Shown one piece after another: positions 7,192 through 41,733 of a stretch of 64,000 bases of DNA (positions are counted from its first letter, which is position 1; every line of letters begins with the position of its first letter). The translations under genes and the position numbers were made by a program. Location of the stretch: IMG/VR virus record IMGVR_UViG_3300032782_000001, positions 62,001 to 126,000 of that record; one strand, given 5' to 3'. The notes beneath the pieces are model-generated. The model saw nothing but the letters and a program-made list of their open reading frames with translations. It was not told the origin of the DNA and did no database searches.

Positions 7192-8400
7192 ATGACGTAT
7201 GAACTTGTCGAGGGTGGACGAGTCCCTATTAAGGCATGGACTCAGGGTGTGAAGTTTGAAGCAGGAGCCAAACTCCAGCTCATCAAAACGGCCATGCTTC
7301 CAATCGTGCACGGGCACATCGCGGTCATGCCCGATGTCCATTATGGCATCGGAGCGACTGTCGGAAGTGTTATTCCAACCTTGAAAGCCATTATCCCGGC
7401 CGCGGTCGGAGTAGACATTGGCTGCGGAATGATGGCCGTTCGTACGACCTTATCCGCTGATGACCTTCCAGATAAGGCAGACGAACTCTTGTTCACCCAT
7501 ATCTCGGCAGCCGTCCCGCATGGAGGAGGGAAGGATAAGGCGGTCGGTTCATGGCAGAAAGTGCCAAAATACGTCAACGAGGCGTGGGGAGGTATTGCTC
7601 CGGGGCTCGACGGCATTCTGCGTCGTCATGGGCGCTCCTTGATGCCGAACGCAGAAGGGCAGCTCGGGACGCTCGGCGGAGGTAACCACTTCGTAGAAGT
7701 TTGCCTGGACCAGAATCAACGGGTTTGGTTCATGCTCCATTCCGGTTCCCGTGGCATTGGAAATCGGATCGGAACGCATTTCATCGAGCTGGCCAAGAAA
7801 GATATGGCTCGACTTGATCGCAGACTCCCTGACAAGGACCTTGCATACCTTGAGGAAGGTACTGAACATTTCGACGATTACGTTCAGGCGGTCACGTGGG
7901 CCCAAGACTATGCCCGCATTAATCGTGAACTGATGATGCGCGCGGTGGTGGATGCAGTTCGGAAGTCTGGTCTGCCGAAGTTCACTCTCACTGATGTTGC
8001 AGTGAATTGTCATCACAATTACGTCGCCCGCGAGACCCACTTCGGCGAGGAAGTGTGGGTTACAAGGAAAGGCGCTGTCCGTGCCCAGAAGGGCGACATG
8101 GGGATCATTCCCGGATCTATGGGCGCCAAGAGTTACATCGTTCGCGGAAAAGGGAACCCTGACAGTTTCAATTCTTGCTCGCACGGAGCGGGTCGCGTAA
8201 TGGCTCGAGGTGAAGCCAAGAGAACTATTACGCTCGAACAACACCGGGCGGATACCGCGGGGGTTGCCTGCCGCAAGGACAAAGAAGTTGTCGATGAAAG
8301 CCCGTCCGCTTACAAGCCTATCGACGATGTCATGGCCGCTCAGTCCGACCTCGTTGATATCGTCTTCACCCTCAAACAAATCACGTGTGTCAAAGGCTAA
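7192..8400 (+). CDS. rtcB: RtcB RNA 2',3'-cyclic phosphate/5'-OH ligase
   Basis: MPDVHYG, VGVDIGCG, GTLGGGNHF, HSGSRG, HHNY, TRKGA, PGSMG, SCSHGAGR, AYKPI motifs. Confidence 0.97.
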   Translation: MTYELVEGGRVPIKAWTQGVKFEAGAKLQLIKTAMLPIVHGHIAVMPDVHYGIGATVGSVIPTLKAIIPAAVGVDIGCGMMAVRTTLSADDLPDKADELLFTHISAAVPHGGGKDKAVGSWQKVPKYVNEAWGGIAPGLDGILRRHGRSLMPNAEGQLGTLGGGNHFVEVCLDQNQRVWFMLHSGSRGIGNRIGTHFIELAKKDMARLDRRLPDKDLAYLEEGTEHFDDYVQAVTWAQDYARINRELMMRAVVDAVRKSGLPKFTLTDVAVNCHHNYVARETHFGEEVWVTRKGAVRAQKGDMGIIPGSMGAKSYIVRGKGNPDSFNSCSHGAGRVMARGEAKRTITLEQHRADTAGVACRKDKEVVDESPSAYKPIDDVMAAQSDLVDIVFTLKQITCVKG

Positions 8401-13855: not shown

Positions 13856-14321
13856 GGTCCGTCTTCAATTCCGGCTCGATTTTGACTGCTCCGTGTTTCT
13901 TGACAATGTGTTCGATAGTCTTAGTAGTGGAAGGCATTCCGGGAAGATCAGGGATGATGACGAGTTCTACATCAGTCCCTTCAAGTCCATGAATCACCTT
14001 TTCGTCACATAACATGTCCCAGAATGGATTATTCTTGAACATGAGACGGACGTTGAATCGACGGACGATAGCGTCGAGACGTTTGACATCTCGAAGAATG
14101 AATGCGGAGGATACGACTTTGAGTCCGTTGATGATCTCAAGTCGTTGAGTTTCGGAGACAATTGGGCGGGCGTGCCCTTTGGCCGCCCGCACCAAATCGT
14201 CCGAATCTACTGCGACGAGGAGTCTATCACATAGACTACGGCATCTCTGCAAGTACAGAAGATGACCATAATGAAACAGGTCAAAACAGCCCGTCGTCAG
14301 TCCGACGACGATCTCTCTCAC
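13839..14321 (-). CDS. cytidylyl/adenylyltransferase (RfaE-II/TagD-like HxGH family)
   Basis: TTGCFDLFHYGH, AVDSD, KGHARPI, STT motifs. Confidence 0.85.
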   Translation of the reverse strand: MREIVVGLTTGCFDLFHYGHLLYLQRCRSLCDRLLVAVDSDDLVRAAKGHARPIVSETQRLEIINGLKVVSSAFILRDVKRLDAIVRRFNVRLMFKNNPFWDMLCDEKVIHGLEGTDVELVIIPDLPGMPSTTKTIEHIVKKHGAVKIEPELKTDHETES

Positions 14322-15121
14322 GGCGATCCGAAACCGCCCGCTGCCACCTGGCTAAAGGCCGCTGCCGCCTGGCTGGCTCGAACGGCAGACTGGCTGACGA
14401 GGATGAAGGCTTTCCGGATCTCCGAAGGACTGTTCGTCGGAAGAAGAATCCAACTTCCATCGATGCCCATCTGTTCGAAAACCCTGCGGAAGTCGGTATG
14501 ACCACCGTCATCGATTCCCATGGCCGCGATGATGTGGCTCTCCTGCCTACGAAGGTCTCGCACGAGAGGTTCCACTGATGCAGGTCGCCGATGGGTCGTC
14601 GAGTGGACATCCGCTCCGTCGGTCACGATGACGGTCACCGTACGGACCGGAACGCCAGCGTCCGAGAACTCTTGGCTCTTGGCCAAGACCTGTCCGAGAG
14701 TGACCGCCGTCTGATCGTAGAGGGGCGTCCCTCCATTGGCCCGATAGTTCTTGTTGTCGAGCTTGGGAGCATTGTCAAGCGTGACGTACGGGTAGATGGG
14801 CGCCGTCCCGTTGAGGGTTCTGCAGCACACGAGAATCCCGTCTTTCTGCTTCGACTTACCAAGTGCCTCAATCACGAGATTGACGCCATCTCGTACGACC
14901 TGTTCGTTCCCCGCGTCTCGAATGGAACCGGAGTCGTCGACGAGGAAGGTGACAAGCAGAACCTCTGAAGCTTGCACATCATCCACCTTCACGCCGAGGC
15001 CTGCCTGGATGGCCGCTCCCATGTCGGGAATGTTGAGGACCGCAGCGCCAGCGGCGGTGATGGTATTCTCCGCCTGAGCGGTCTGGAAGAGACTGTTGAC
15101 GTTGTTTGCGTTCTGGCTCAT
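14318..15121 (-). CDS. von Willebrand factor A (TerY-like) protein
   Basis: MIDAS DDSGS, GGTPLYD, VIVTDG; start at MSQNANN preferred. Confidence 0.85.
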   Translation of the reverse strand: MSQNANNVNSLFQTAQAENTITAAGAAVLNIPDMGAAIQAGLGVKVDDVQASEVLLVTFLVDDSGSIRDAGNEQVVRDGVNLVIEALGKSKQKDGILVCCRTLNGTAPIYPYVTLDNAPKLDNKNYRANGGTPLYDQTAVTLGQVLAKSQEFSDAGVPVRTVTVIVTDGADVHSTTHRRPASVEPLVRDLRRQESHIIAAMGIDDGGHTDFRRVFEQMGIDGSWILLPTNSPSEIRKAFILVSQSAVRASQAAAAFSQVAAGGFGSP

Positions 15122-15422
15122 CGTTTGATCCCTCGTCGATATTCCTTGTAATTCTCCAACACCCGTTGCTGGTGCTCCCAATCGTGAGGTTTGAAACTCA
15201 CTTCTGGGATGTCGGTCGGTCCCAACTTATTGGCTCCATGCTTTGGCACAGTTCCAACAGGTTGGGACAGACAACTCTGGACATTCTCCGCACCGAGTCC
15301 TGACCTTCCGCAAACAGGACAGGTCACAGTTTGGAAGGGGTAGTCAGTCAGTTCGACTTCTACCCCCTGCCCAGTACACCAGGTCTTGCTCATGTAGACT
15401 GATACTTTTACAGTGATTCGAT

Positions 15423-17225: not shown

Positions 17226-19091
17226 TCAAGAGATGACGAGGAGCGAGATTTCTTGCCTTGATACTGCGTAGAGTCCGGCATTTGCGGCGATAAGTTTCAT
17301 TCCTGCGTCCACGAATGGCTCCGTATCAGGAAAGGTCTTCATCACCGACGCGGAGCCATTCTCTGCCTTGACTTGGACCACACCTTGATCGGTCGGGACG
17401 AGCAGTACGCGGTTCACGGCACAACATCCGCGAATGTTGGAAAGCCAAGACCCGTCGCCGGCTTCGGCTTCTGCCGAAGCTTCCACAGCGCCGTCGGGCC
17501 GCAGGACCGTGCAGCGATTGACAGTCTTGCTGCCTTCTTGAGTCGAAGTCAGGAACCAAGCCCTGTCTTTCGACAATTCGCAAGTTGCATCGATCAGTTT
17601 TCCTCTGATCAGATGAACTTTGACAGAATCGTTGATTCCGCCAGATTTGGTTCCGAACACGAACGACCTGACAAGTTGTCCAGCCCTGTAAAAGCCGAAT
17701 CCAAAGGTCTGCCCTGTCCAGAATAAAGTTTGGCCTCCAAGAACGTCCCCGATCCTTTCCGGACCGAGCCGTCCTTCCTTGTACAGAGAGTCCCCATGGA
17801 CCCAGAACAAGTTCTCATCATTCGTATCGAAGATAGTCAATGAACCAAGAAGATCTGCATCCGTCCTGCCCGCGGAAGTTCCTCCTACGAGTTTCACGAC
17901 GATCCCGTCTCTAGCCATGAAAGTTGATCTACCCTGAAGTCGGAACCTAAGCCTCGGATCAATTTGACCGTCTGCCACTCGTGAAGAATCTTCACGAATA
18001 AACTTCCCATTGTCGTGATAAAGCCAAATGAGGCGGCCTTCGTGGAGGTCGGCCCTTACTATAGTTCCGCGGGTTTGGAAAATCCTTGTAGCTTTCACCT
18101 GGCCCCGGATTTCCACATGTGCTTTGACAGCTTCAGGTACAATAGTGGAACAGTGGGGACATGAAGTGCGAGCGTGTTCTGCTCCACATCCTGAGCATTT
18201 TGTCCAATGGAGCCTCTCGAGCAGACTAGCAGGAAATGGTCCCCTCTCATCTCGCTCGAATACGAGATGGAACCTCTGCAAGAGATCATCCGGCAAAACA
18301 CCGTATGGAATGGCGGGCTTCGGGTATTTCACTTCCGGGTGGAAGACTGTAATTCGTTTGAGAGGCCTTGCTGAATGGACTAAAGCCTTCGTCGGATCAT
18401 GCGGTTTATAAGTACCTCCGAACGGGTCCGTGAAGAGAAGGCACTGGAACACCATTACGAAGAATGCATACCAATCCGAATTCTCGTTATGAGCCTTCAC
18501 GAGATGGAGGCTGTTGGCAGCAGGATCACAAAGAGTTGGATCCACAAATCGCTGCGTGAAAACAGAGCAACGGAATTTCCCGAATTGCATTGAATCGGCA
18601 TCAATGAAATCCGCGTCCTTCCCCGTTACCATGACATTCAAATCATTGAAATCGCCGATAACCGCTCCCGCCTTGTGTATGGCGTCTACGGTAATCCTCA
18701 TCCCCTTGAGAATAGAAATGACATCTTCGGTGCTGATAGCCTGACGGAAATTGCGTTGCGTGTAACGAAGGAGAACTTCCGCCCCTTTCAGCATTCGCAT
18801 CACATATCCGACAGTCCGTCCTTTTCCATCCAATGCCAAGGCATCTGGAATAACGACATGGCCTGGCATACCTTTCGGGAATGCGGGCAATTTCAATTGA
18901 TGCTCTTCAATCCTGCGAGATGCTGCTGCTTGAGCTTCGGGTTGACCGTCGAAGTCGGGATGGTCAGGTCGCTTAAAGATCTTCACAACCTGATCAGTGC
19001 CGAATGGATAGATCTCCGCTTCTCCTCCTTGACCGAGAATTTTGCTCGGATCCAGCCGACTCTTTTTTCCGTCAACCCAGATGTCAGGCAC
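17226..19091 (-). CDS. Ser/Thr protein kinase (TerY-P type) with CxxC and beta-rich C-terminus
   Basis: LGQGGEA, VKIFK, IGDFNDLNV, IDADS; GTG start at 19091 overlaps the PP2C stop. Confidence 0.88.
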   Translation of the reverse strand: MPDIWVDGKKSRLDPSKILGQGGEAEIYPFGTDQVVKIFKRPDHPDFDGQPEAQAAASRRIEEHQLKLPAFPKGMPGHVVIPDALALDGKGRTVGYVMRMLKGAEVLLRYTQRNFRQAISTEDVISILKGMRITVDAIHKAGAVIGDFNDLNVMVTGKDADFIDADSMQFGKFRCSVFTQRFVDPTLCDPAANSLHLVKAHNENSDWYAFFVMVFQCLLFTDPFGGTYKPHDPTKALVHSARPLKRITVFHPEVKYPKPAIPYGVLPDDLLQRFHLVFERDERGPFPASLLERLHWTKCSGCGAEHARTSCPHCSTIVPEAVKAHVEIRGQVKATRIFQTRGTIVRADLHEGRLIWLYHDNGKFIREDSSRVADGQIDPRLRFRLQGRSTFMARDGIVVKLVGGTSAGRTDADLLGSLTIFDTNDENLFWVHGDSLYKEGRLGPERIGDVLGGQTLFWTGQTFGFGFYRAGQLVRSFVFGTKSGGINDSVKVHLIRGKLIDATCELSKDRAWFLTSTQEGSKTVNRCTVLRPDGAVEASAEAEAGDGSWLSNIRGCCAVNRVLLVPTDQGVVQVKAENGSASVMKTFPDTEPFVDAGMKLIAANAGLYAVSRQEISLLVIS

Positions 19092-19917
19092 GGTGCAAAA
19101 TTCTCCTTCCAGAAACGAAAGTCGTGTCGTCTTCCAGCAAACCTGGAAATCTGGACCCGACTCCTCCATTAGCAAGGACGAGGTGACGCCGTCCAACATC
19201 CGCGTTGAGGAAGAATTTTTCATCCTCCCAAAGCTGACTCATGGGTCCGACAGTTCGAGTCTTTCCAGGAAGCGGTTTGTCCGCTGACTTATGAAGTGAA
19301 GTCAACCCGTCGCTCCCGATCAAGAAGCTTTGAAGGTCTTCAGTCTTCATCGCCTTATGCACAACGAATTGCATTTGTTCCTCCTTCATGGAGGTCTTCA
19401 CAAGCCCGTAGCCAAGATATGGCGGCATATTGCCTTCGAATGGCCCAAGGAATGATGTCTCCCCGTTCACAGAGATGCACCCATCGCCGATAGACGCGAA
19501 TTCGGTCCGTTCGGGGGTAATGACAACGCAAACAACAGTGAAGAGAAAATAGTCGTTGACGAACGATGGATTCACACGCCCTTCGGAATCTTCGGCACCA
19601 ATCCCCCGAGCCCACTTTCGCATCTCCCAGAGGGCGTCCCGTCGGATAATAGACCAGGCCAGAATTTCTCTGGGGTTCCGAATAGTCCATCCAGATCGGA
19701 CTCGAAGGTGGTCAGCGATTGTGTGGGTCAGAAGAAGAGACCCGAATTGTGCTCCGACTTCGCTATACTTACCGCTCGAGCATCCGTCGCAAACCACTGC
19801 GATTGTGAAATCCGAAGTTTGGAGAATCGATACCCCATCCTGATTGTTCTTGCCAGCTCGGATATGATCATATCCGGGAATACTCCCGCGAGCCAGTTCG
19901 AAAATGTTCTGCATCAA
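19084..19917 (-). CDS. PP2C-family protein phosphatase
   Basis: NNQD, VVCDGCSS, SIGDG, GSDG, DDTT motifs. Confidence 0.9.
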   Translation of the reverse strand: MMQNIFELARGSIPGYDHIRAGKNNQDGVSILQTSDFTIAVVCDGCSSGKYSEVGAQFGSLLLTHTIADHLRVRSGWTIRNPREILAWSIIRRDALWEMRKWARGIGAEDSEGRVNPSFVNDYFLFTVVCVVITPERTEFASIGDGCISVNGETSFLGPFEGNMPPYLGYGLVKTSMKEEQMQFVVHKAMKTEDLQSFLIGSDGLTSLHKSADKPLPGKTRTVGPMSQLWEDEKFFLNADVGRRHLVLANGGVGSRFPGLLEDDTTFVSGRRILHRA

Positions 19918-26987: not shown

Positions 26988-29903
26988 GTGGCAATCGGCG
27001 TAACCGCATACTCGACTTCCAAAACACCAAATCTGGTGGAAGCCATTGCAGTTCTGACATCGACTGAGTCGATTCCAGATCCTGTCAGCGTGCTGGTATC
27101 CAATATTGCACAGGTTTATGGCGCCTTACAAATCACACAAGGAGCATTTACCTTATCAGAATTGTCTCTGACAAAGTCCACTCCACCGGCCAACCAATCT
27201 TCTTTTTCTTACACATTTGTAATCCGATTCAATTCTCCAGGTCTTTACACGCCAGGAAGGTTCCAAGGTCCACCTGGTCCTCAAGGGCCCCCAGGTCAAT
27301 TCCAAGGTCCACCTGGTCCTCAAGGGCCCAGGGGGCTCACCGGGGCTATGGGCATCAGGGGTGTTCCAGGGCCTATGGGTCCGGTCGGTCCTCCTGGTTT
27401 CAACGGCGCCACCGGACCCATGGGTCCGCAGGGGGCCACCGGTCCGGGAGGTGGCCCTCCAGGCGCAACCGGTCCTGCAGGGCCGCAGGGTGCAACTGGA
27501 CCTTTTGGAGCGACTGGACCACAAGGTGTAGCTGGAGCGACTGGACCACAAGGTGTCACAGGACCATTTGGGCCAACTGGTCCCCAAGGACCAGCAGGAC
27601 CGGAGTCTGGTGGAGGAAACGTTTTCGTCTACCGAGACTCAGAACCATCGCCAAACAACACAACAGTCTTCGCTTCATTTGATGAAGCGTATTCGGCGGC
27701 TATTTCTACAAATGCTCCGGCTGTTATTGTCAGTGACGACACGCTCGGGGACTGTGTCGTAGGCAACGCCTACGGCAACAATGCCACCGTCGATTCTGTA
27801 GTGGGTTCCACGGTCACGCTCAAGGGCCTCCATGGGTTGAATACAGGGCTCGTCGGCAAATTGATTGGCATTTCCAACGCGACGAGTCCTGGCACGAACG
27901 GTCTATACACCATCACGGCGATCCTTTCATCGAAGAGTCTTCAGATAGCGAACGCAGCAGCCACTATAGACGACATTTTCGAGTGGCGTCTCGTCGATGG
28001 AAGCACAGCGTCTCTCACTCCTGGCCCGTCCAATTTGGTTCTTATTCAGGGTGCCGTCGTTCCTAACGGAACGAATAGCCCGCCAGGTGCATTTTCATCG
28101 GCGAGTGTTGGACAGACAGTCACCCTCACGAACGGCCTCTCTGGAAATAATGGGACCTTCCCCATCGTCGCGTATGTCTCGCCTTCGTCCGTATGGATCC
28201 AGAACGCCTCTGGTGTTGGCCCCGATAGTGTGTATCTCGTGGCCGCGAGTGGCAGTACAGCCTCGATCATAAGCTGGGACTCCATCCGCAATACGGCTAT
28301 CCTTACAGGCCTTTCGAGTGTCCCTCCGCAGACGGATGGTTGGCACATCATCATCACTGGATCGGCAAGCAACGATGGCATCTACCAAGTTGTACGCACA
28401 CTCTCGACGACTTCCATCGAGATCCGTTCGTACGGAGCCACAGCGCCCGATGCGAACAACGGCGCCATCTCATGGAATCTCTGCCCATCGAATGCATTGA
28501 TCCCGTTTGCCGCTGTGCCAGTCCTGTCCGTCACGGGTCTCAGTAGCGTGCCCAGTTCGGCGGTTGGGAACGCACTGAGCCTCGGCAACGCCACGACTTC
28601 CGGCAACAACGCCTCTTCCGCAATCCTTGGGTGGGTTGACGCCACATCCGTCTATTTGAATTCATTCAATGGAAGCTTCGTGGCACCAGATCCGAACAAC
28701 GGTTCTCTTTGGTGGTATCTCGGCACAAATTACGACCTCAGCCGCATCACGCTCACAGGGCTCGGTGTGCCTTTCGGCGGCTCTTCCTTGTCTGTCCTCG
28801 AAGGCGCAACCTTCAACCAAGGTATAGCTGCCGTCATCAACTCCTTGGAGGTAGCGGGAGAAGGGAGCCTACAGCCTTTCTACGGGACGCTTGCCCTAGT
28901 CGGCCCATTCAATAGCCTGCTCAACATCTCTGATGGGAGTACGATTAGCTGCAACTCCAAAGACTTTTTTGACCTTAGCTGGGGGCTCGCGACCCTAAAT
29001 GTGACGGTGGCCTCCCAAGCCGAAATTGATAACCTTGCATGGACGGGAGACAACTATAACGCAGGTCTCAATGTCACCATGTCCGGAGGTGCTGAAGTTG
29101 GCGGGGACCTTATTTCTGGTGGCGCGGGCTCCGTGGGGATCACGATCCTGGATGCGACAGTTAATCCACCGCCCGTGACTTTCGGCGGCTATTACGGAAC
29201 GCCAGGGAGTGGTATTCAAATCACATATGAAGCCACAGCCGCTTCTCTTGTCCCATTCACACAGAATGGTCCACCTACTCCCAATAATTCAGGGCAACCT
29301 CAAGGTCAATACAATGTCGATGTCGGAACGATGTATTTCGATTCCGGCTCGAAGCAACCATTTTGGTGGGATGGTACGCAGTGGGTTTCATACGTTGCTC
29401 CGTCGTTCGCCACGACTAACGTATATCAGGGCCATGCCTCTCCCCAAACTACGAATTTGAATGCCGGCGACCATGTAATGTTTGACTCGTCCGACACCGA
29501 AACTGGTGGCGGAAACATTAGTCTTGACACCACATCGCCATATCAAACGGCACCAGGTCCAAGTATTGGTCGTATCTCACTTGCCGCAGAGCATCTTTAC
29601 AAACTCACGTTCAATCCTTCGCAAGTTTCCGGCGCTGGGAATATTTATTTCCAATGGTTCGTCTACAATAGTATTTACCCGAACGGTCAAGCCATGGGGA
29701 ATGGCACGCGGATGGACGATGGTACTAATGTTGGTGACTTTGCAAGTCATGGCCCGTGTGTCGCGTATGTATACACAAATTCTGGGAGTGGCGGTGCTGG
29801 CACCGCCGAGATCCGTATCACATTTAATAATTCGATAACGGGACTCGGGGAAAATGCGGCATCTCCTCTTTACGCGTGGTTTACCGTCGAGCAAGTCTAC
29901 TAA
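26988..29903 (+). CDS. collagen-repeat virion fibre / decoration protein
   Basis: long Gly-X-Y tract followed by repeated beta-rich Ser/Thr/Gly domains; 971 aa. Confidence 0.85.
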
Positions 29904-29940
29904 ATTACGTAGACCCGGCTTTTAATGATTCCATAAGTCC

Positions 29941-30924
29941 GTGGGTATTAACATAAGTGCGTTCGCCAAGTCTCAAGACTCAGTTTCTCTTGAGGGTGTG
30001 GCCGTACTTAACTCTGATACCCAATTAGCAAGCCCCGTCAGCACTCTCATCGCAAATCTTTCTGGTGTTTACAGTGCTCTTGGAATCAGCTCGAATACTC
30101 TTATTCTGACGGAGTTATCTTTCGTACGAGCCACCCAACCTTCCGCTCAAAATGCTCAATATAGCTATTCTTTTACCATCCGATTTGGTATTATTGGTCA
30201 ACCGCAACTCGGACGGTTCCAAGGACCTCCGGGTCCACCTGGACCAGTCGGTCCAATGGGGCCTTTCGGCCCGCCAGGATCTCCCGGACCTACAGGTTTT
30301 ACTGGTCCCTTCGGTCCCACTGGCGTAGCTGGTCCACCAGGAGCCACAGGACCTGTAATCACAGGGCCAGCCGGTCCGACGGGTTTTCCGGGTTCAACTG
30401 GGGCCGCTGGAACTACAGGTCCCCAAGGTCCCACTGGGGCCGCCGGAGCTACAGGTCCCCAAGGTCCCACCGGGGCCGCCGGACTTACCGGATTTACTGG
30501 TCCACAAGGAGCAACAGGAACAGCAGGACCAGTTGCTCCTGACGTCCACCTCTTTGATGGAATTGCCGGTCGATTCCAGACGGATGCCATTAGTGACGAA
30601 CTAGGCAGCATTGTCTTTAATCCATCGGCCATCCTTGCAGCTGGTTCCTTGACACGAACCATCAAACTTTTGGCCGTTTTGGAATGCTCAGTTGGTGGTC
30701 AGACTGCAAGTCTGGAACTTTTCAATTTGACTGATGCAATCTCCGTTGTCACGATTAGTACGAGCAACACTTCTCCGACCGTTGTTAGGTCTGCAACTCT
30801 TGTAGTCCCGACTGACTTGCCTAATAGTGAAAAGCTCTATGTCCTTCGTCTCACGAGGATGGGCGGAAGTTCCACTGATCTCGTGACTTGCAAACGGGCT
30901 GCCTTGGAGATCGTATACTCATGA
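29941..30924 (+). CDS. collagen-repeat protein (N-terminus paralogous to 26988 gene)
   Basis: Gly-X-Y tract; shared ~90 aa N-terminal domain ending GRFQGPPGP. Confidence 0.85.
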
Positions 30925-34994: not shown

Positions 34995-35341
34995 CCTTGT
35001 GAAGCCGTACTGAAGAAGGAAAACAGAGTTCAAGACATGTTGCGCTATAGCTCGATGCAGACCAGGCCAGTGGCGACGGAAACGTCGCAAGCGGCTTGGT
35101 GTGTCGTCGGTTCAAGCTTTGCGCATCAGCCGGGACTCATTCTCACCTCCAGCCGCAAGCCCGCCGCCCGCAATCTGGAGGATACGTAAGGCGGCCTTCT
35201 TTAGTTCTCCAACCGAGGAGAAAGAAGGCCGCCGGAGAGATCCTGGCGGCCTTCAACGTTTTGGGGTTCAAGAATCGACATGAGCAAGCGTCCTGATACA
35301 ATCCGAGAGAGCTATCGACTCTCACCGCTTCCAACCCTTAC

Positions 35342-35418
35342 GGGGTGAGCGCTGGGACGCAAGGAGCTCTGTAAAAGCACCGCCTCTGGCTAGCCGGGTT
35401 CGATTCCCGAGCACCCCA
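35342..35418 (+). tRNA. tRNA-Tyr(GTA), atypical
   Basis: GCT-CTGTAAA-AGC anticodon arm, variable arm, GGTTCGATTCC. Confidence 0.65.
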
Positions 35419-35490
35419 CTAAGAAAGTTCAACGAGGAAGACATGAAACGCAAGACCAAGCCCGGAAAAGCCGGGCCAAAACAGAAAGGA

Positions 35491-35565
35491 GAACCCGTAG
35501 TTCAGCGGTAGAACGACTGGCTTTTAACCAGTGCGCCGTGAGTTCGATCCTCACCGGGTTCACCA
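35491..35565 (+). tRNA. tRNA-Lys(TTT)
   Basis: cloverleaf, CCA. Confidence 0.9.
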
Positions 35566-35580
35566 GTCGTAAGACTGAAT

Positions 35581-35652
35581 GGATCCGTAGTTCAGAGGTA
35601 GAACAGCTGGCTCTTAACCAGCGTGTCGAGGGTTCGATTCCCTCCGGATCCT
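35581..35652 (+). tRNA. tRNA-Lys(CTT)
   Basis: cloverleaf. Confidence 0.9.
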
Positions 35653-35722
35653 CCGGGCCACGAAAGTGCCTGACGTGTCACATGCGTGCTTCTGCACGCC
35701 ACGGTTGAGAAGTGTTCATCAT

Positions 35723-35796
35723 TCGGGGTTAGGACAGTGGCAGTCCAGCGGTCTCTGACACCGCCAACGTGAGTTCGATTCTCACACCCCGGACCA
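35723..35796 (+). tRNA. tRNA-Gln(CTG)
   Basis: GCGGT-CTCTGAC-ACCGC, CCA. Confidence 0.85.
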
Positions 35797-36027
35797 AGCC
35801 CAGACAAAGGTGCAGGGCTTCGATCTCTGACAATCTAACGCAGAGCGATTGAGAAGGCTCAAGGCAGCTGGAAGTTGCCAAAAGTCTTCAAACCGGGAGC
35901 TTCATGCCGCAGCCAGGTGGAAGGTGTGGAGCTCCCGGGAACCGAACTCGTGTCGGTTCAGGTCTGAAAATAACCAACGGTGGGTCCCGAAAGGGTTAGC
36001 GGGTTCGACTCCCGCTTTCAGATCCAT

Positions 36028-36329
36028 TCCAGGATAGCCAAGCGGAAAGGCAGGTGGCTGTCGATAAGGCAGCGTCTTGGGGTGACCCAAGATGGAAAAT
36101 CGGGTGAATTCAAGGAACCCTAAACCGGAAGGTATGGGAACCCTGAGCCAAGCCGGTCGAGGACAAAAGTAGACCGGAAGGTGCAGAGACTAGGAGGTGA
36201 GCAGTCCAGCGATAAACTCCACTAGCGCCCGACGTCCCTCGAGGACGATGAGATAGTCCACGCCTTGAGGAAACTCAAGGGCTTCGTGTAACCACCCTAC
36301 CGCAGGTTCGAATCCTGCTCCTGGAGCCA
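36028..36329 (+). tRNA. tRNA-Asn(GTT) interrupted by a group I intron
   Basis: exons 36028-36061 and 36289-36329 join to GGTGG-CTGTTAA-CCACC; U1-A72, G73, CCA. Confidence 0.85.
36062..36288 (+). mobile_element. group I intron (no ORF) at anticodon position 35/36
   Basis: P1 GCTGT|C pairs with GGCAGC giving the U.G splice pair; core elements GAATTCAAGGAA, AACCCTGAGCCAAG, GTGCAGAGACT, GATAGTCC; terminal G. Confidence 0.88.
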
Positions 36330-36352
36330 TTACAAGCTCGGTAATGTCCTTC

Positions 36353-36886
36353 ATGGACAAAGCCGAGAAACGTCGGAGGACCGCAATCCTCGTCACTGAT
36401 TTTCGACGTCGAATCAAGGAGAAAGCTGTCTCCTATAAAGGTGGTCAGTGCCAGAAATGCGGATACGACAAATGCGTGGCCGCTCTCAGTTTCCACCATC
36501 GTGATCCGAAAGAAAAGGAGTTCCGGCTCTCTTCAGGAAGGACTAAGAATTGGGAGAAGGTCAAGAAGGAGCTCGACAAATGCGATCTCCTTTGCGCGAA
36601 TTGTCACATGGAAGTCCATGATCAGTGGAAGCGAGAGGCTCGGGAACAGCACGAAGCGGAAATCGTTTCTCGTCGCCGCCGGCCAAAGACTTCTCGGGTT
36701 CATAAAGCTCCGGTGATTCGACCCTGGCCTGAATCCGACGAACTGCGGCATCTCGTAGAGACTACTCCGATCACTCATATTGCAAAAATGGTGGGGGTGT
36801 CCGATAAAGCAGTGCTGAAGCGATGTAAGAAGCTTGACATCGCGACTCACCCCGCAGGATTTTGGGCCCGTAAAAAGGCCGCTTGA
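36353..36886 (+). CDS. HNH endonuclease with C-terminal HTH
   Basis: CQKCGY..ALSFHHRDP..KCDLLCANCH. Confidence 0.85.
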   Translation: MDKAEKRRRTAILVTDFRRRIKEKAVSYKGGQCQKCGYDKCVAALSFHHRDPKEKEFRLSSGRTKNWEKVKKELDKCDLLCANCHMEVHDQWKREAREQHEAEIVSRRRRPKTSRVHKAPVIRPWPESDELRHLVETTPITHIAKMVGVSDKAVLKRCKKLDIATHPAGFWARKKAA

Positions 36887-36888
36887 AT

Positions 36889-36963
36889 GGTGACGAAGCT
36901 CAATGGTAGAGCAGCAAGTTGTTAACTTGTCGGAAGAAGGTTCGATTCCTTCCGTCATCGCCA
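36889..36963 (+). tRNA. tRNA-Asn(GTT)
   Basis: CAAG-TTGTTAA-CTTG, GCCA end. Confidence 0.85.
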
Positions 36964-37091
36964 TTGTTTAGGTGCCAGACCTCGAATCTGGAATACTTAA
37001 ACAGGGTAAGTGGAACCCAAACCCGTAGAAGCTCCGAAAATCAGATGCTGTTTGGTGTAAAAAGTTTTAGAGCAACTACGGGCCACTTCAC

Positions 37092-37165
37092 GCCGGCTTA
37101 GTTCTCGCGGGAGAACCCCTGTTTCGTAATCAGGTGAGAGCGGTTCGACTCCGCTAGCCGGCTCC
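37092..37165 (+). tRNA. tRNA-Thr(CGT)
   Basis: cloverleaf, GCCGGCT acceptor. Confidence 0.8.
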
Positions 37166-37209
37166 GGTGCAAATCTGCAGTTGTCAACTGTAGAGTGGCA
37201 TCGACAATT

Positions 37210-37334
37210 GGGGATCTTGGGTAATGGTAACCCACTCAGTGTGAAAACTGATCCGGCATCGCACCTCGCCTTTGAAAGAAGGCACCAAGCGGTTCCTACA
37301 AGCTATCCTCGTTCGAATCGAGGGATCCCCACCA
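37210..37334 (+). ncRNA. tRNA-mimic RNA 1 (conserved module inserted in the variable region)
   Basis: acceptor, D and T arms plus ACCA, with CCGGCATCGCACCTC-hairpin-GCGGTTCCTACAAGC insert. Confidence 0.8.
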
Positions 37335-37367
37335 GGCACTCACAAGCCTAGAATTGTGAGAAAGTAT

Positions 37368-37494
37368 GGGGAAGAAGGGCACGGCGCCCAGTCCGCTGTT
37401 AACGGAACAAACCCGGCATCGCACCTCGCTCTTGAAAGAGAGCATCAAGCGGTTCCTACAAGCTAATCAGGTTCGACTCCTGACTTCCCCGCCA
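37368..37494 (+). ncRNA. tRNA-mimic RNA 2 (GTT loop)
   Basis: same insert; GGGGAAG/CTTCCCC acceptor, GCCA. Confidence 0.8.
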
Positions 37495-37523
37495 GCCGGT
37501 TACGGGCTTTAAACGTGACGAAT

Positions 37524-37656
37524 GAGGGACAAGGGCACGGCGCCCACCAGCCATCCAAGCTGGCCGCAAGGCACAACTCGGCATCGCACCTCGCTTTCGC
37601 AAGGAAGCACTCAGCGGTTCCTACAAGCATACCAGGTTCGACTCCTGGGTCCCTCT
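37524..37656 (+). ncRNA. tRNA-mimic RNA 3 (TCC loop)
   Basis: same insert; GAGGGAC/GTCCCTC acceptor. Confidence 0.8.
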
Positions 37657-37691
37657 CGAAGCCTTGGTCACAGGCTTTAAACGTGATGAAT

Positions 37692-37827
37692 GAGGAAGAA
37701 GGGCATGGCGCCCACCCGGTCAATAAAACCGGTGCCTAAAAAGCACCCGGCATCGCACCTCGCTTTCGCAAGGAAGCACCAAGCGGTTCCTACAAGCAAA
37801 GTTGGTTCGAATCCAGCCTTCCTCACC
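37692..37827 (+). ncRNA. tRNA-mimic RNA 4
   Basis: same insert; GAGGAAG/CTTCCTC acceptor. Confidence 0.8.
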
Positions 37828-37950
37828 GAGACGTCCATTACGTGCTGCTTACAAGCAAAATGCTCAACGGTAGAGCATCTGATCGGAACTCAGAGAGAAG
37901 TGGGTTCAACTCCCACTTTGCAAAAATCAGCAGCGCAACTCGGACGTCTC
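37828..37950 (+). ncRNA. tRNA-mimic RNA 5 (module extends the acceptor stem)
   Basis: GAGACGTCC/GGACGTCTC ends, GCTGCT/AGCAGC stem, TACAAGC, then D, anticodon-like and T arms. Confidence 0.7.
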
Positions 37951-37989
37951 AAACCTTTTGGCCGATCATGAATCGGTCTGACAGATTAC

Positions 37990-38111
37990 GGGGAAATTGG
38001 GCACGGCGCCCGCCACCTTGAACAAGTGGTTGAATCCGGCACTGCATCTCGGTCCTGTAAGGGATCAATCAGCAGTTCCCACAAGCGAGGTTCGACTCCT
38101 CTTTTCCCCCA
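37990..38111 (+). ncRNA. tRNA-mimic RNA 6 (covariant module)
   Basis: CCGGCACTGCATCTC-GGTCCT/GGGATC-GCAGTTCCCACAAGC insert. Confidence 0.75.
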
Positions 38112-38116
38112 ATTTC

Positions 38117-38190
38117 GGCCCCATCATCTAGTGGTCAGGATCCCGGCTTTTCAACCCGGGTAGGAGAGTTCAATTCTCTCTGGGGTCACC
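38117..38190 (+). tRNA. tRNA-Glu(TTC)
   Basis: cloverleaf, TTTTCAA loop. Confidence 0.8.
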
Positions 38191-38316
38191 GCAGTTGCCA
38201 GAGGCGCATCTGAGCGCTTCGTACCAGCTTGGACTGGTGGTAGCCGCATTTCATGACAGGCCGGCCCGTTGGGCGACGAGGCGCATGAAGGTCAGTCCCA
38301 CCAAACGGGGCGTTTC

Positions 38317-38393
38317 GGGCTCTGAGCTAGTCTGGTGATACAGCGTCCGCCTGAAGAGCGGAAGAACTCGGTTCGATTCCGAGAGAGCCCACC
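38317..38393 (+). tRNA. tRNA-Phe(GAA)
   Basis: TCCGC-CTGAAGA-GCGGA. Confidence 0.85.
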
Positions 38394-38554
38394 GATCGCG
38401 TCCATCAGCTGGATCTAACAAGCAAATTCCCGGTTCGACTCCGGGCTCCCCGACTAGATCTCCGGATCTAAACCTCGGGGAGTGGCGGAACGGTAGACGC
38501 ACCCGTATAGGAACGGGCCGAAAGGCACTTCAGCTTCAGCACTCGGACGCGATC
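38394..38554 (+). ncRNA. tRNA-mimic RNA 7, circularly permuted (YrlA Y-RNA-like topology)
   Basis: terminal stem GATCGCGTCC/GGACGCGATC; ACAAGC, then T arm, closed acceptor stem CTCCCCGA/TCGGGGAG, D arm, anticodon-like arm. Confidence 0.8.
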
Positions 38555-38562
38555 AAACATTT

Positions 38563-38638
38563 CGGGGAGTAGCTCAGTCTGGTAGAGCACGAGCTTTGGG
38601 TGCTCGTTGTCGCAGGTTCAATTCCTGTCTCCCCGACC
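38563..38638 (+). tRNA. tRNA-Pro(TGG)
   Basis: cloverleaf. Confidence 0.9.
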
Positions 38639-38651
38639 GTAGTGTAATGCC

Positions 38652-38927
38652 ATGGACCCTTTTGCGTTGTGGGTAAAAGGAGCCATTCTTCACAGACTCT
38701 CCGTGGTACATCCCGGTGGAATTCGCCCAGAAGTGCGAATCATGAAGGGGTATGAACAATTCGTAGCCTCCTGTAAAGATTGCAATTGGAGGTCTACAAT
38801 CTCTCGTGTTGGAACAGTCGACGATCTCGAATTTGTACAAGGGTTTGTCAACTCGACCGAATCCGCGGGGATCCTCACAGACAGATTCATGAAGGAATTT
38901 CTCGTCTTTTCGGTAATGGCGAGTTGA
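38652..38927 (+). CDS. CxxC protein with VMAS tail
   Basis: CKDC; ends FLVFSVMAS*. Confidence 0.6.
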   Translation: MDPFALWVKGAILHRLSVVHPGGIRPEVRIMKGYEQFVASCKDCNWRSTISRVGTVDDLEFVQGFVNSTESAGILTDRFMKEFLVFSVMAS

Positions 38928-39104
38928 AGAGGAAATCATGGACTGGGTGGAAAAAGAAACAGAAATCGTCCTTCGGAATATCCGAAGGAATTGGAACGGA
39001 TCCTGGGTTCCTCGAATTGAACAAAAGCTTCGGGAGCGAATCCGAAAGGAGCTCCAGTCAAAAGCAGAGAAAGGGTTGAAAGTAGTATATCAACCTTCAG
39101 ACAT

Positions 39105-39181
39105 GGTGGTATGACTCAGCTGGTGAAGAGGGTGCTCTGTGACAGCATTTTCGGCGGGTTCGATCCCCGTATACCACCCCA
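39105..39181 (+). tRNA. tRNA-His(GTG)
   Basis: G-1:C73, CTGTGAC loop, CCA. Confidence 0.85.
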
Positions 39182-39182
39182 T

Positions 39183-39255
39183 CTCCCCGTAGTTCAGTGG
39201 ACAGAACGCGAGTTTCCTAAACTCGATGTCGCAAGTTCGATTCTTGCCGGGGAGA
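39183..39255 (+). tRNA. tRNA-Arg(CCT)
   Basis: cloverleaf. Confidence 0.9.
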
Positions 39256-39339
39256 TCGTAACGGTGGTTTGCCAAGCATCTTCCTCACGGATGTTTTGGC
39301 AAACCACCGTGTAAATCGATCGGGGCGAAAGCCTCGCAT

Positions 39340-39413
39340 GCCTCGTGATGCGACTGGGGTCGCAGCTGCACTGTCGATGCAGTGAGACGGGTTCAATTCC
39401 CGTACGGGGCGCC
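39340..39413 (+). tRNA. tRNA-Asp(GTC)
   Basis: CTGCA-CTGTCGA-TGCAG. Confidence 0.8.
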
Positions 39414-39491
39414 GGTTCCTGAGGTCGAAATCACTGCAACTGATTTCGTAATCGGGGTAAAAGGTTTCCGATCAGAACGAAAGTTCTGCAT

Positions 39492-39570
39492 GGGGATGTA
39501 GAGGAGAGGCCGTCCTCGCCTGCCTGTCACGCAGGAAACTTCGCGGGTTCGAATCCCGTCATCCCCGCCA
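39492..39570 (+). tRNA. tRNA-Asp(GTC)
   Basis: CCTGC-CTGTCAC-GCAGG, GCCA. Confidence 0.9.
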
Positions 39571-39718
39571 GGTCAAAGAAGCGAGATTGTCGACATCTGC
39601 CGTATTTCCGCGAGGTATGGCTGCTTCTAACCTGACAATTTTCGCCCCTGGAGCCAAGATTCGCTTGGCGGGGTGCACGCAGAGACAGAGAAAGCGGGGC
39701 TGGCAACCCCACAAACCC

Positions 39719-40889
<1,171 letters not shown>

Positions 40890-40923
40890 ACTGCGAATAC
40901 TGGTCCACCTGGTAGAGTGCTCC

Positions 40924-41733
40924 ATGGGTACTCCCAGGTGGACTGTTTACTGCCATACGCACGTTGCAACTGGCCGTCGCTACATCGGGCTTACGAAGCT
41001 CACGATGATGAAGCGGTGGAACCAACACCTTCGCGATTCGCGGTTGAAGGTCGGTAAAGGATGTCGCCACCTTTGGAACGCTATCCGTGCTTACGGGAAG
41101 GATGCGTTCTCGCACGAGGTGCTCGAGATCTGCACGAATCTCGAAGTAGCAAATCTCGCGGAAAAATGTTGGATCGAGTTACACGACACTAGGAACTCCA
41201 AAAAAGGCTTCAATTTGATGCGCGGCGGTGGTCATACACCTCACCCGAACAGGAATCCTTGGGATCGTCCCGAGTATCGAGTCAGGTCCTCTGCCGCTTC
41301 CAAGAAGAAGTTCGAAAATCCGGCGTTTCGAATGAGTCAAATTCAAAGGTTGAAAGCACTGGCAGACGACCCAAAGAATCGGGCGGCTGTCAAAGCAGCT
41401 CTAAATTTACCTGAATCCAAAGCCAAACGGTCTGACATCTCTAAAGAGATTAGAAGTCGGCCGGAAGTTGTAGCGCGCATGACTGAAGTGCGCAGTTCAC
41501 CGGAGTTTAAAAGTAGGCATCGAGAAGCCTGTTCGAAGGCGATGTCGCGGCCAGAAGTCAAGGAGAAAGTGTCATTGGCTTCCAAAGCCATGTGGGCGGA
41601 TCGCAGGCCGACTCACTGCAAACGTGGCCACCCACTGGATGACGCTTATGTCGGCAAGAACGGTAATCGAACTTGCCGCCCATGCCGGAAACTCCGGGCC
41701 AATGAATCCACCACTGTAAAAGAACAGAGTTAG
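40924..41733 (+). CDS. GIY-YIG homing endonuclease with repeated DNA-binding helices
   Basis: TVYCHT...YIGLT..RW..H, E..WI...GFN; C-terminal HCKRGH..CRPC. Confidence 0.85.
   Translation: MGTPRWTVYCHTHVATGRRYIGLTKLTMMKRWNQHLRDSRLKVGKGCRHLWNAIRAYGKDAFSHEVLEICTNLEVANLAEKCWIELHDTRNSKKGFNLMRGGGHTPHPNRNPWDRPEYRVRSSAASKKKFENPAFRMSQIQRLKALADDPKNRAAVKAALNLPESKAKRSDISKEIRSRPEVVARMTEVRSSPEFKSRHREACSKAMSRPEVKEKVSLASKAMWADRRPTHCKRGHPLDDAYVGKNGNRTCRPCRKLRANESTTVKEQS

Follow-up and report, generated by a model that had tools for sequence, protein, structure and literature searches.

Genes for Ro60 in phages and bacteria are accompanied by genes for tRNA-like Y RNAs, which lie within ∼4 kb and on the same strand (PMC4201824; PMC12135203). 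A GNCGAAN0-1G (CGAA) motif close to the 5' end in these RNAs is the presumed Ro60 contact (PMC4201824; PMC12135203), and a survey of jumbo phages mentions that a few of them have a TROVE protein with a tRNA-like partner (PMC7824862). Here, we describe a family of RNAs encoded in a 64,000-nucleotide stretch of DNA (the window), which corresponds to positions 62001-126000 of the IMG/VR virus record IMGVR_UViG_3300032782_000001 (G000). The window contains seven tRNA-like elements that carry one covarying RNA module in three different layouts. Like YrlA and YrlB, these are tRNA-mimicking non-coding RNAs, and they most likely form a novel class of viral non-coding RNAs that resemble Y RNAs.

G000 is a complete virus record of 436,316 bp with direct terminal repeats and a G+C content of 50%. 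In a search for RNA-seq evidence, the runs listed were DNA runs from wetland and soil. The middle of the window is occupied by at least 44 tRNA genes on the + strand, which form a single array that includes a group I intron. The seven-element cluster sits within this array, between tRNA-Thr and tRNA-Pro. Positions without a record label are window coordinates, whereas G000 coordinates refer to the whole record. The features discussed are summarized in Table 1.

Table 1. Coordinates of the RNA elements, the linked operon and other features of G000
Feature	Position	Strand	Remarks
V-type mimic 1	37210-37334	+	7-bp acceptor, ACCA 3' end, 6-nt anticodon loop; R1 78 bits
V-type mimic 1, module	37254-37303	+	variable region
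V-type mimic 2	37368-37494	+	canonical anticodon loop CUGUUAA (Asn-GUU-like), GCCA end; module 37414-37463
Spacer hairpin, copy 1	37498-37519	+	3' of mimic 2; read from sequence
V-type mimic 3	37524-37656	+	loop CAUCCAA (A33), extra GCC-GCAA-GGC hairpin, no CCA; module 37579-37628
Spacer hairpin, copy 2	37666-37687	+	read from sequence
V-type mimic 4	37692-37825	+	anticodon loop CAAUAAA (A33), extra hairpin; module 37748-37797
Leader/trailer element	37828-37950	+	stem-a 9 bp, stem-b 8 bp; 5' leader paired with 3' trailer
V-type mimic 5	37990-38110	+	stem-b ACUGC/GCAGU, GUAA cap, 9-nt anticodon loop; module 38037-38086
Permuted element	38394-38554	+	orthologues in G003, G039 and G024
tRNA-less module hairpin	G000 337433-337507		fourth layout, second cluster
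Operon	G000 332050-337381 (L228:2050-7381)		outside window; vWA, 385-aa, JAB, 143-aa ORF, short ThiF/E1-like
RtcB RNA ligase, full-length	7192-8400	+	416 bits
MVP homologue, 868 aa	21003-23609	-	MVP_shoulder 4e-29, Vault_3 repeat
Group I intron	36050-36280	+	Rfam 76.6 bits, inside tRNA array
Phage EF-Tu	39587-40768	+	three EF-Tu domains, last truncated; within tRNA array
GIY-YIG endonuclease	40837-41733	+	inside tRNA array

The module, its layouts and its covariation

The module consists of two helices (stem-a and stem-b) that flank an internal loop of ∼5 x 5 nucleotides, followed by a single-stranded 3' tail. Stem-a has 6 bp and a GNRA loop where the module is an insert, and 7-13 bp where it is open-ended and forms the RNA termini. 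One strand of the internal loop reads N(C/A/U)CUC and G is always next, such that the invariant CUC is followed by a G-C pair; the other strand has 4-6 nt, of which the first is A and the rest are free. The 8-bp stem-b is formed either by eight unbroken pairs or by 5-6 bp, a pyrimidine mismatch and 2 bp, and the mismatch is frequent. The tail, (U/C/A)ACA(A/C)GC, is unpaired and lies on the 3'-going strand; in open forms the strand facing it bears an A-rich AAAAYC stretch. In V-type elements, which hold the module as a hairpin in the tRNA variable region, and in permuted elements, the T arm comes directly after the tail. In the leader/trailer type ACAA is the 5' leader and GC supplies tRNA positions 1-2, and hence the first two acceptor pairs, so that the ACAA/GC tail of 37828-37950 overlaps the 5' end of its tRNA. 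In the tRNA-less type the tail leads into a 30-50-nt loop alone. A ribozyme or riboswitch was considered and set aside, as Rfam gave no match and the tail lacks a conserved partner for a pseudoknot.

Five of the window elements are V-type, one has the leader/trailer layout and one is permuted. The V-type bodies combine a 7-bp acceptor with a D arm that is short and a T arm of canonical form, and in all five the minimum free energy and centroid structures from RNAfold are a cloverleaf with an extra arm (z-scores of -1.9 to -4.3). The leader/trailer and permuted elements fold into long terminal helices around a tRNA-like core (z-scores of -6.0 and -5.1, respectively). The permuted element begins with the 5' strand of stem-a, AUCA, stem-b, UAACAAGC, the T arm and a hairpin-closed acceptor, and continues with a class-II-like D arm (GGCGGAAUGGUAGACGC), an anticodon-like arm, a GNRA mini-hairpin, stem-b, ACUC and the 3' strand of stem-a. 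Mimic 5 is the most divergent V-type copy. The duplication of the spacer hairpin indicates that a unit of mimic plus spacer was duplicated in tandem.

A preliminary description of this region, made from the letters alone, had located seven such RNAs, and all of its positions are correct except for the second spacer hairpin, which starts at 37666 instead of 37665 (the first copy is at 37498, as described). The insert does lie in the variable region of all five V-type elements, and its length from CGGC to ACAAGC is exactly 50 nt in each of them. The apical hairpins vary among copies and are GNRA-capped, and the compensatory change from AUCGC/GCGGU to ACUGC/GCAGU is present in the 37990 copy, both as described. 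The anticodon loops are indeed mostly non-canonical (four of the five V-type copies and both other elements), the copy at 37368 being the only canonical one. The count of seven is right for the window but too low for the genome, since three more elements are present at G000 337433-337764. This second cluster contains a tRNA-less hairpin, a V-type element and a leader/trailer element, and a terminator-like hairpin comes after them. The module of its V-type element, the sixth such copy in the genome, is located at G000 337564-337613 by model R2 (below), and the mimic ends in UCCA.

The base pairing is supported by covariation at every level of sampling. Two covariance models were built: R1 from the five window copies and R2 from 17 copies. 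In the window copies all 65 pair cells are paired, with double changes in five of 13 pairs, and none of 500 shuffles matched this combination of pairing and compensation. The 17 seed copies are 95% paired, with compensatory changes in 10 of 13 pairs. Searches with R2 matched nine of 42 megaphage records, each time beside one and the same operon, and gave nothing in the 33 others, a distribution by which chance can be excluded. In 62 further viral loci R2 gave 78 matches, of which 70 are distinct. These 70 copies, from 35 viral loci, are 92% paired and show compensation in all 13 pairs, compared with 38-52% pairing in a control in which the partners were slid by 1-3 columns. The proposal of a single covarying module in permuted layouts on tRNA-like bodies is borne out by all 13 pairs and by its recurrence in related megaphages. 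U-G pairs are abundant on the + strand only and 76 of the 78 R2 matches lie on the operon strand, which points to an RNA from the + strand and not to a DNA-level structure.

The layouts themselves are conserved between genomes at 58-64% protein identity. Eight leader/trailer elements in five genomes are 96% paired, with compensatory changes in 14 of 17 pairs, and the permuted layout is present in four genomes with compensatory changes in stem-a. Module hairpins without a tRNA occur in G000, G003 and G038, which marks the module as an independent unit. Relatives reached via the phage EF-Tu gene have the same architecture with different helix sequences. An exact search of viral contigs with the 16-mer of stem-b plus tail gave 43 matches, all chance and none with module context; a scan with the tail and T loop returned, among the matches listed, mostly ordinary tRNAs and revealed two further carriers. 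In Rfam searches of the window region, the second cluster and relatives at E <= 10, no family matches the module, the matches being tRNA and, on the permuted core only, sub-threshold YrlA and permuted tmRNA (transfer-messenger RNA). The preliminary description had named an existing Rfam model that matches the family in all topologies as a result that would overturn it, and none was found; a literature search likewise found no description of the module.

In G038 and G024 (L230 and L232), Cys-rich ORFs (open reading frames) that by eye resemble HNH endonucleases lie between, and apparently have inserted into, the module RNA genes, which suggests homing-endonuclease traffic in this cluster.

Intact V-type elements are missed by both ARAGORN and Rfam, and only the body of the leader/trailer element (37855-37922; anticodon loop UCGGAAC) passes as a tRNA on its own (Rfam, 45 bits). 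Once the module is deleted in silico, 55 of 76 V-type elements are recognized as tRNAs by ARAGORN, with a variety of anticodons and lengths of 71-92 nt. In copy 1 the excision leaves a variable region of 5 nt; in the other copies this region is 9 nt or longer or includes a further hairpin. The bodies have U33 in 63% of cases, compared with 96% for the ordinary tRNAs of the phage, and U8 in 40%, compared with 76%. Within orthologous types the anticodon loop is kept while the anticodon stem covaries: YUUCCAC recurs in five phages and CGGUAAA, which has G33, in four, and another such loop is C(U/G)GUUAA. G33 is conserved in the Tyr- and Asn-like types. In G003 ordinary tRNAs exist for the same anticodons as the mimics. 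Permuted elements close their acceptor with a hairpin, with a UUCG loop (G039) or with ACCA plus a spacer, and in the permuted genes of G003 and G024 ACCA comes right after the 3' acceptor strand. The bodies are redundant, partly degenerate paralogues with an anticodon loop still under selection, a combination that fits mimics of particular tRNAs better than decoders.

Relation to Y RNAs and the linked operon

The permuted element and its orthologues have the order T arm, closed acceptor, D arm that the preliminary description had recognized as that of YrlA, and in both RNAs the 5' and 3' ends form a long stem with an internal loop. The other six window elements do not share this order and keep that of a normal tRNA. 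The tRNA-less members parallel YrlB, and a further likeness to both YrlA and YrlB is that the genes are located within or close to tRNA arrays and, on the same strand, a few kb downstream of a gene for a protein that combines helical repeats with a von Willebrand factor A (vWA) domain. Membership in YrlA, which the preliminary description had put forward for comparison, does not hold. The Rfam model (RF02553) scores 26 bits at 38427-38588 against a gathering score of 69, in an alignment that borrows the D arm of the next tRNA-Pro, and 38390-38558 scanned alone gives no YrlA match at E <= 10. The permuted orthologue of G003 scores 25 bits, and the YrlA and permuted-tmRNA models both align to the permuted core (38394-38554) below threshold. 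With a sub-threshold score and no CGAA motif, these RNAs are not YrlA members. In place of CGAA, the family conserves the CUC-G loop and the YACA(A/C)GC tail; its stem leaves at the variable-arm position and the anticodon arm is kept; most members are unpermuted (V-type or leader/trailer); and the neighbouring vWA protein lacks a detectable TROVE sequence signature, the tightest neighbour being a ThiF-like E1.

The Ro60 of Thermus phage phiLo with its Yrl1 and Yrl2 RNAs (PMC12135203) is similar in that a phage ring-type RNA-binding protein is encoded next to small RNAs with a stem, internal loop, stem arrangement, but the phiLo RNAs bear CGAA and no tRNA body and the phiLo Ro60 is a recognizable TROVE protein. 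Class II tRNAs (Leu, Ser, Tyr and Sec) also have an extra arm at the variable position, and the D arm of the permuted type is class-II-like. The arm of the present family differs in its length of ∼50 nt, its internal loop and its conserved 7-nt tail, and it is attached to bodies of many class I identities that have often lost U33 and U8.

Canonical TROVE proteins are encoded in other megaphages. In G040 (L235:150-290, - strand) an RNA with the order T arm, closed acceptor, D arm scores 40.6 bits with the YrlA model, below gathering, and lies downstream of the TROVE gene in a tRNA array, with RtcB 5 kb off. Such sister phages with TROVE and a YrlA-like RNA show that there are two different solutions in related phages. 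In G041 (L237:2267-2405 and 2574-2707, - strand) two tRNA genes of 134-139 nt beside the TROVE gene have ∼60-nt inserts in the anticodon-arm region and represent another kind of interrupted tRNA.

The operon next to the RNAs encodes, in order, a helical-repeat and vWA protein (P0001), a 385-aa protein, a JAB protein and a ThiF/E1-like protein, the last of which is short and weakly PRTRC-ThiF-like. This order is kept in 54 of 62 further loci. Family and fold searches gave no assignment for the 385-aa protein. Of the 42 records, precisely the nine with the module also have P0001. In G000, P0001 is followed 3.4 kb downstream, on the same strand, by the second cluster, an arrangement that holds in all nine carriers; the first V-type module is usually found 94-850 nt past the ThiF stop, however long the insertions between the vWA gene and ThiF are. 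Among relatives, operon and RNAs are inside the tRNA array, between tRNA-Pro and tRNA-Arg/His/Asp, and this tRNA neighbourhood is that of the window copies, from which we conclude that the array copies and the operon of G000 became separated by 235 kb.

P0001 and its homologues have 621-648 residues with the vWA domain at the C-terminus, and more than 1,400 homologues are found at ∼60% identity. The predicted model of P0001 (predicted local distance difference test score of 80) displays an N-terminal beta domain, ∼320 residues of helical repeats and the vWA domain. Its top six PDB matches are all TROVE/Ro60 structures, including the phiLo Ro60 (9kop/9l5y), with E values of 2.5e-8 to 3e-6 and alignments of 500-550 columns. 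The best match among Swiss-Prot models is C. elegans RO60, and 57 of the 100 nearest ESM clusters are TROVE. Comparison of the P0001 profile with PDB sequences identified the vWA domain only, which was also the only domain ranked by VIA-align. P0001 thus appears Ro60-like in architecture, on the evidence of its model; we use only the term Ro60-like because the Pfam, helical-domain and profile-profile comparisons give no TROVE.

Homologues of P0001 are present at 22 loci (L329-L350), on contigs binned as Myxococcota (Polyangia, Kofleriaceae, Sandaracinaceae and Sorangium) and on a scaffold of 799 kb from the isolate Paraliomyxa miuraensis SMH-27-4, and at six of these loci the RNA module occurs as well. 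Judging from these assignments, the hosts of the carriers are probably Myxococcota.

The preliminary description had singled out TROVE/Ro60, rtcB and MVP as genes to look for nearby. No Pfam TROVE is found in G000, but the best full-length fold matches of P0001 are Ro60/TROVE. RtcB is encoded in G000 and, in G003, lies ∼3 kb from the vWA operon, but it is present in only three of the nine carriers, and one of the six without it is 94% complete. A search of the G000 genome found neither EndA nor Archease. A homologue of the eukaryotic major vault protein (MVP) is encoded in the window and has relatives in ten other phage contigs (41-55% identity), but none of these ten records carries the module or P0001, and the MVP link was rejected; the Rfam Vault model gave no match at E <= 10. 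The Y-RNA-like interpretation itself gains support from synteny and co-occurrence with a Ro60-like vWA protein, and does not extend to YrlA membership or to TROVE at the sequence level.

Other features of the genome

The group I intron is followed on its 3' side by a 180-aa ORF (36344-36886, + strand) with a weak helix-turn-helix match; together they probably represent a tRNA gene that bears an intron and an ORF resembling a homing endonuclease. The phage EF-Tu has relatives in 31 viral contigs, the majority without the module. A scan for promoters and terminators in 35300-39700 gave nothing above chance. Outside the window, two adjacent tRNAs with a UCA anticodon and a tmRNA gene (tag ANDNGALRIAA) are located at G000 139122-139296 and 141433-141807; the UCA tRNAs are named tRNA-SeC by ARAGORN and may be opal suppressors.

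The minus-strand block of the window that includes the MVP-like gene also encodes a vWA protein (14318-15181), a PP2C phosphatase (19084-19917) and two unassigned ORFs of 592 and 665 aa, a layout that recalls TerY-P-type triads. Two neighbouring ORFs of 971 and 327 aa (26988-30924, + strand) contain collagen triple-helix repeats.

Interpretation and significance

From the observed structure, covariation, topologies, distribution and synteny, we infer how these RNAs may be transcribed, processed, bound and used. They would derive from tRNA genes fused to one portable 50-nt module, be transcribed along with the tRNA array or the upstream operon and be cut out by tRNA-processing enzymes. The tRNA part would be recognized by tRNA-binding factors, since it retains its elbow and, in many of the orthologues, also a specific anticodon loop. 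The module would bind a protein as a handle, the likeliest partner being a product of the operon and P0001 in the first place. The RNAs could then act like YrlA and YrlB and join a ring or scaffold protein to tRNA-recognizing enzymes or to tRNA-targeting host factors. We favour, with a probability of about 0.5, this Y-RNA-like adaptor, in which the module serves as a portable handle for protein binding, the elbow and a specific anticodon loop of the tRNA part are presented to tRNA-recognizing factors and the likeliest partner is P0001 or another operon protein.

Several observations weigh against this interpretation. The similarity of P0001 to Ro60 is one of whole-chain fold ranking, with low template-modelling scores (0.23-0.40); Pfam identifies no TROVE domain in 17 P0001 homologues; the helical domain alone matches only generic ARM/HEAT repeats; and in hhalign comparisons of P0001 with six genuine megaphage TROVE proteins the vWA part alone aligns. 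No strand of the module contains the GNCGAAN0-1G/CGAA motif; those on the 5' side read GYGUYCA, and NCUC-G is the conserved loop. In G000 the seven window copies are 235 kb from the operon, and the RNA array tracks the 3' end of ThiF more tightly than it tracks the vWA gene, so another operon protein could be the true partner. Related phages share features by descent, and the linkage could therefore be plain synteny within one phage clade. Lastly, a simple tether would not require the conservation of anticodon loops that is seen among orthologues.

The set of layouts has a known precedent. The bulge-helix-bulge (BHB) motifs of archaea and red algae occur as a hairpin-closed insert, as a helix of leader and trailer and at the ends of permuted tRNA genes, and the module might be a phage counterpart: an endonuclease would cut both strands of the internal loop and RtcB would ligate the products into working tRNAs, such that V-type elements are spliced, leader/trailer precursors circularized, and permuted elements circularized and un-permuted. 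This would account for the layouts, and it is consistent with the ARAGORN calls after module removal, the anticodon loops kept above covarying stems, the ACCA directly past the 3' acceptor strand in the permuted genes of G003 and G024, and the RtcB genes of G000 and G003. Its geometry is different, however, with a symmetric ∼5 x 5 loop that is flanked by one helix of 6 bp or more and another of 8 bp, in place of a 3-nt bulge, 4 bp and a 3-nt bulge. G000 has no splicing endonuclease gene of the EndA type and no Archease, and the ligase is inconsistent among carriers. Excision does not restore canonical tRNAs: most copies are not left with a 4-5-nt variable loop, and cutting at the internal loop would leave the conserved stem-b and tail behind. 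Copies without a tRNA, the degenerate U33 and U8, the ordinary tRNAs with the same anticodons and the UUCG-closed acceptor of G039 are further points against it, and we regard such processing, the main alternative, as unlikely. A fuller version, in which a novel endonuclease acts with a phage or host RtcB, all three layouts are precursors of spliced or circularized tRNA-like RNAs, and the E1-like, JAB and vWA proteins act on the products or are guided by them, appears somewhat less likely again; if true, it would be a protein-dependent system of tRNA splicing and permutation in the bacterial virus world.

It is improbable that the mimics are functional decoding tRNAs with a giant variable arm, charged and used by the ribosome, perhaps with the phage EF-Tu encoded 1 kb downstream. 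The 7-bp acceptors, the discriminator base and, in some copies, the encoded CCA of the V-type elements are as expected of decoders, as are the intact T and D loops and the anticodon loops conserved within orthologous types. The single canonical anticodon loop among five window copies, the family-wide losses of U33 and U8, the conserved G33 of the Tyr- and Asn-like types, the closed permuted acceptors and the redundancy of the anticodons all argue otherwise, and EF-Tu occurs in 31 phage loci, most of which lack the module. We likewise doubt that the modules are cis-acting processing or stability elements, such as sites for a double-strand-specific RNase or protective helices that part the operon mRNA from the tRNA array, with no function in trans. 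The array does start directly past the ThiF stop, often with a tRNA-less hairpin, and the leader/trailer helices resemble the processing stems that flank rRNA; however, modules inside tRNA bodies, an invariant single-stranded tail and CUC loop, tandem copies, and seven copies at a distance of 235 kb would be left unexplained. Chance similarity or a DNA-level repeat, such as a palindrome resembling a miniature inverted-repeat transposable element, would fit the duplicated spacer hairpin and the contribution of tandem duplication to the window copies. In view of covarying pairs in 70 distinct copies with strand-specific G-U pairs, layouts conserved between diverged genomes and 76 of 78 matches on one strand, it is highly improbable.

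The conservation of Y RNAs and Ro60 extends from bacteria to humans, but the evolution of a Y RNA from a tRNA has never been seen directly. The present phage clade displays, side by side and all under selection, ordinary tRNAs, variable-arm handles, wrapped tRNAs, permuted YrlA-like forms and a naked handle, and offers a natural series for the study of modular RNA evolution and circular permutation. The module is a new and well-defined RNA motif, with the CUC loop and the ACAAGC tail as targets for mutation and with use as bait for a protein partner. The family also links tRNA mimicry to an E1/JAB/vWA operon in huge phages, and may be relevant to the ways in which the tRNA pool is protected or manipulated by these phages when they infect their hosts.

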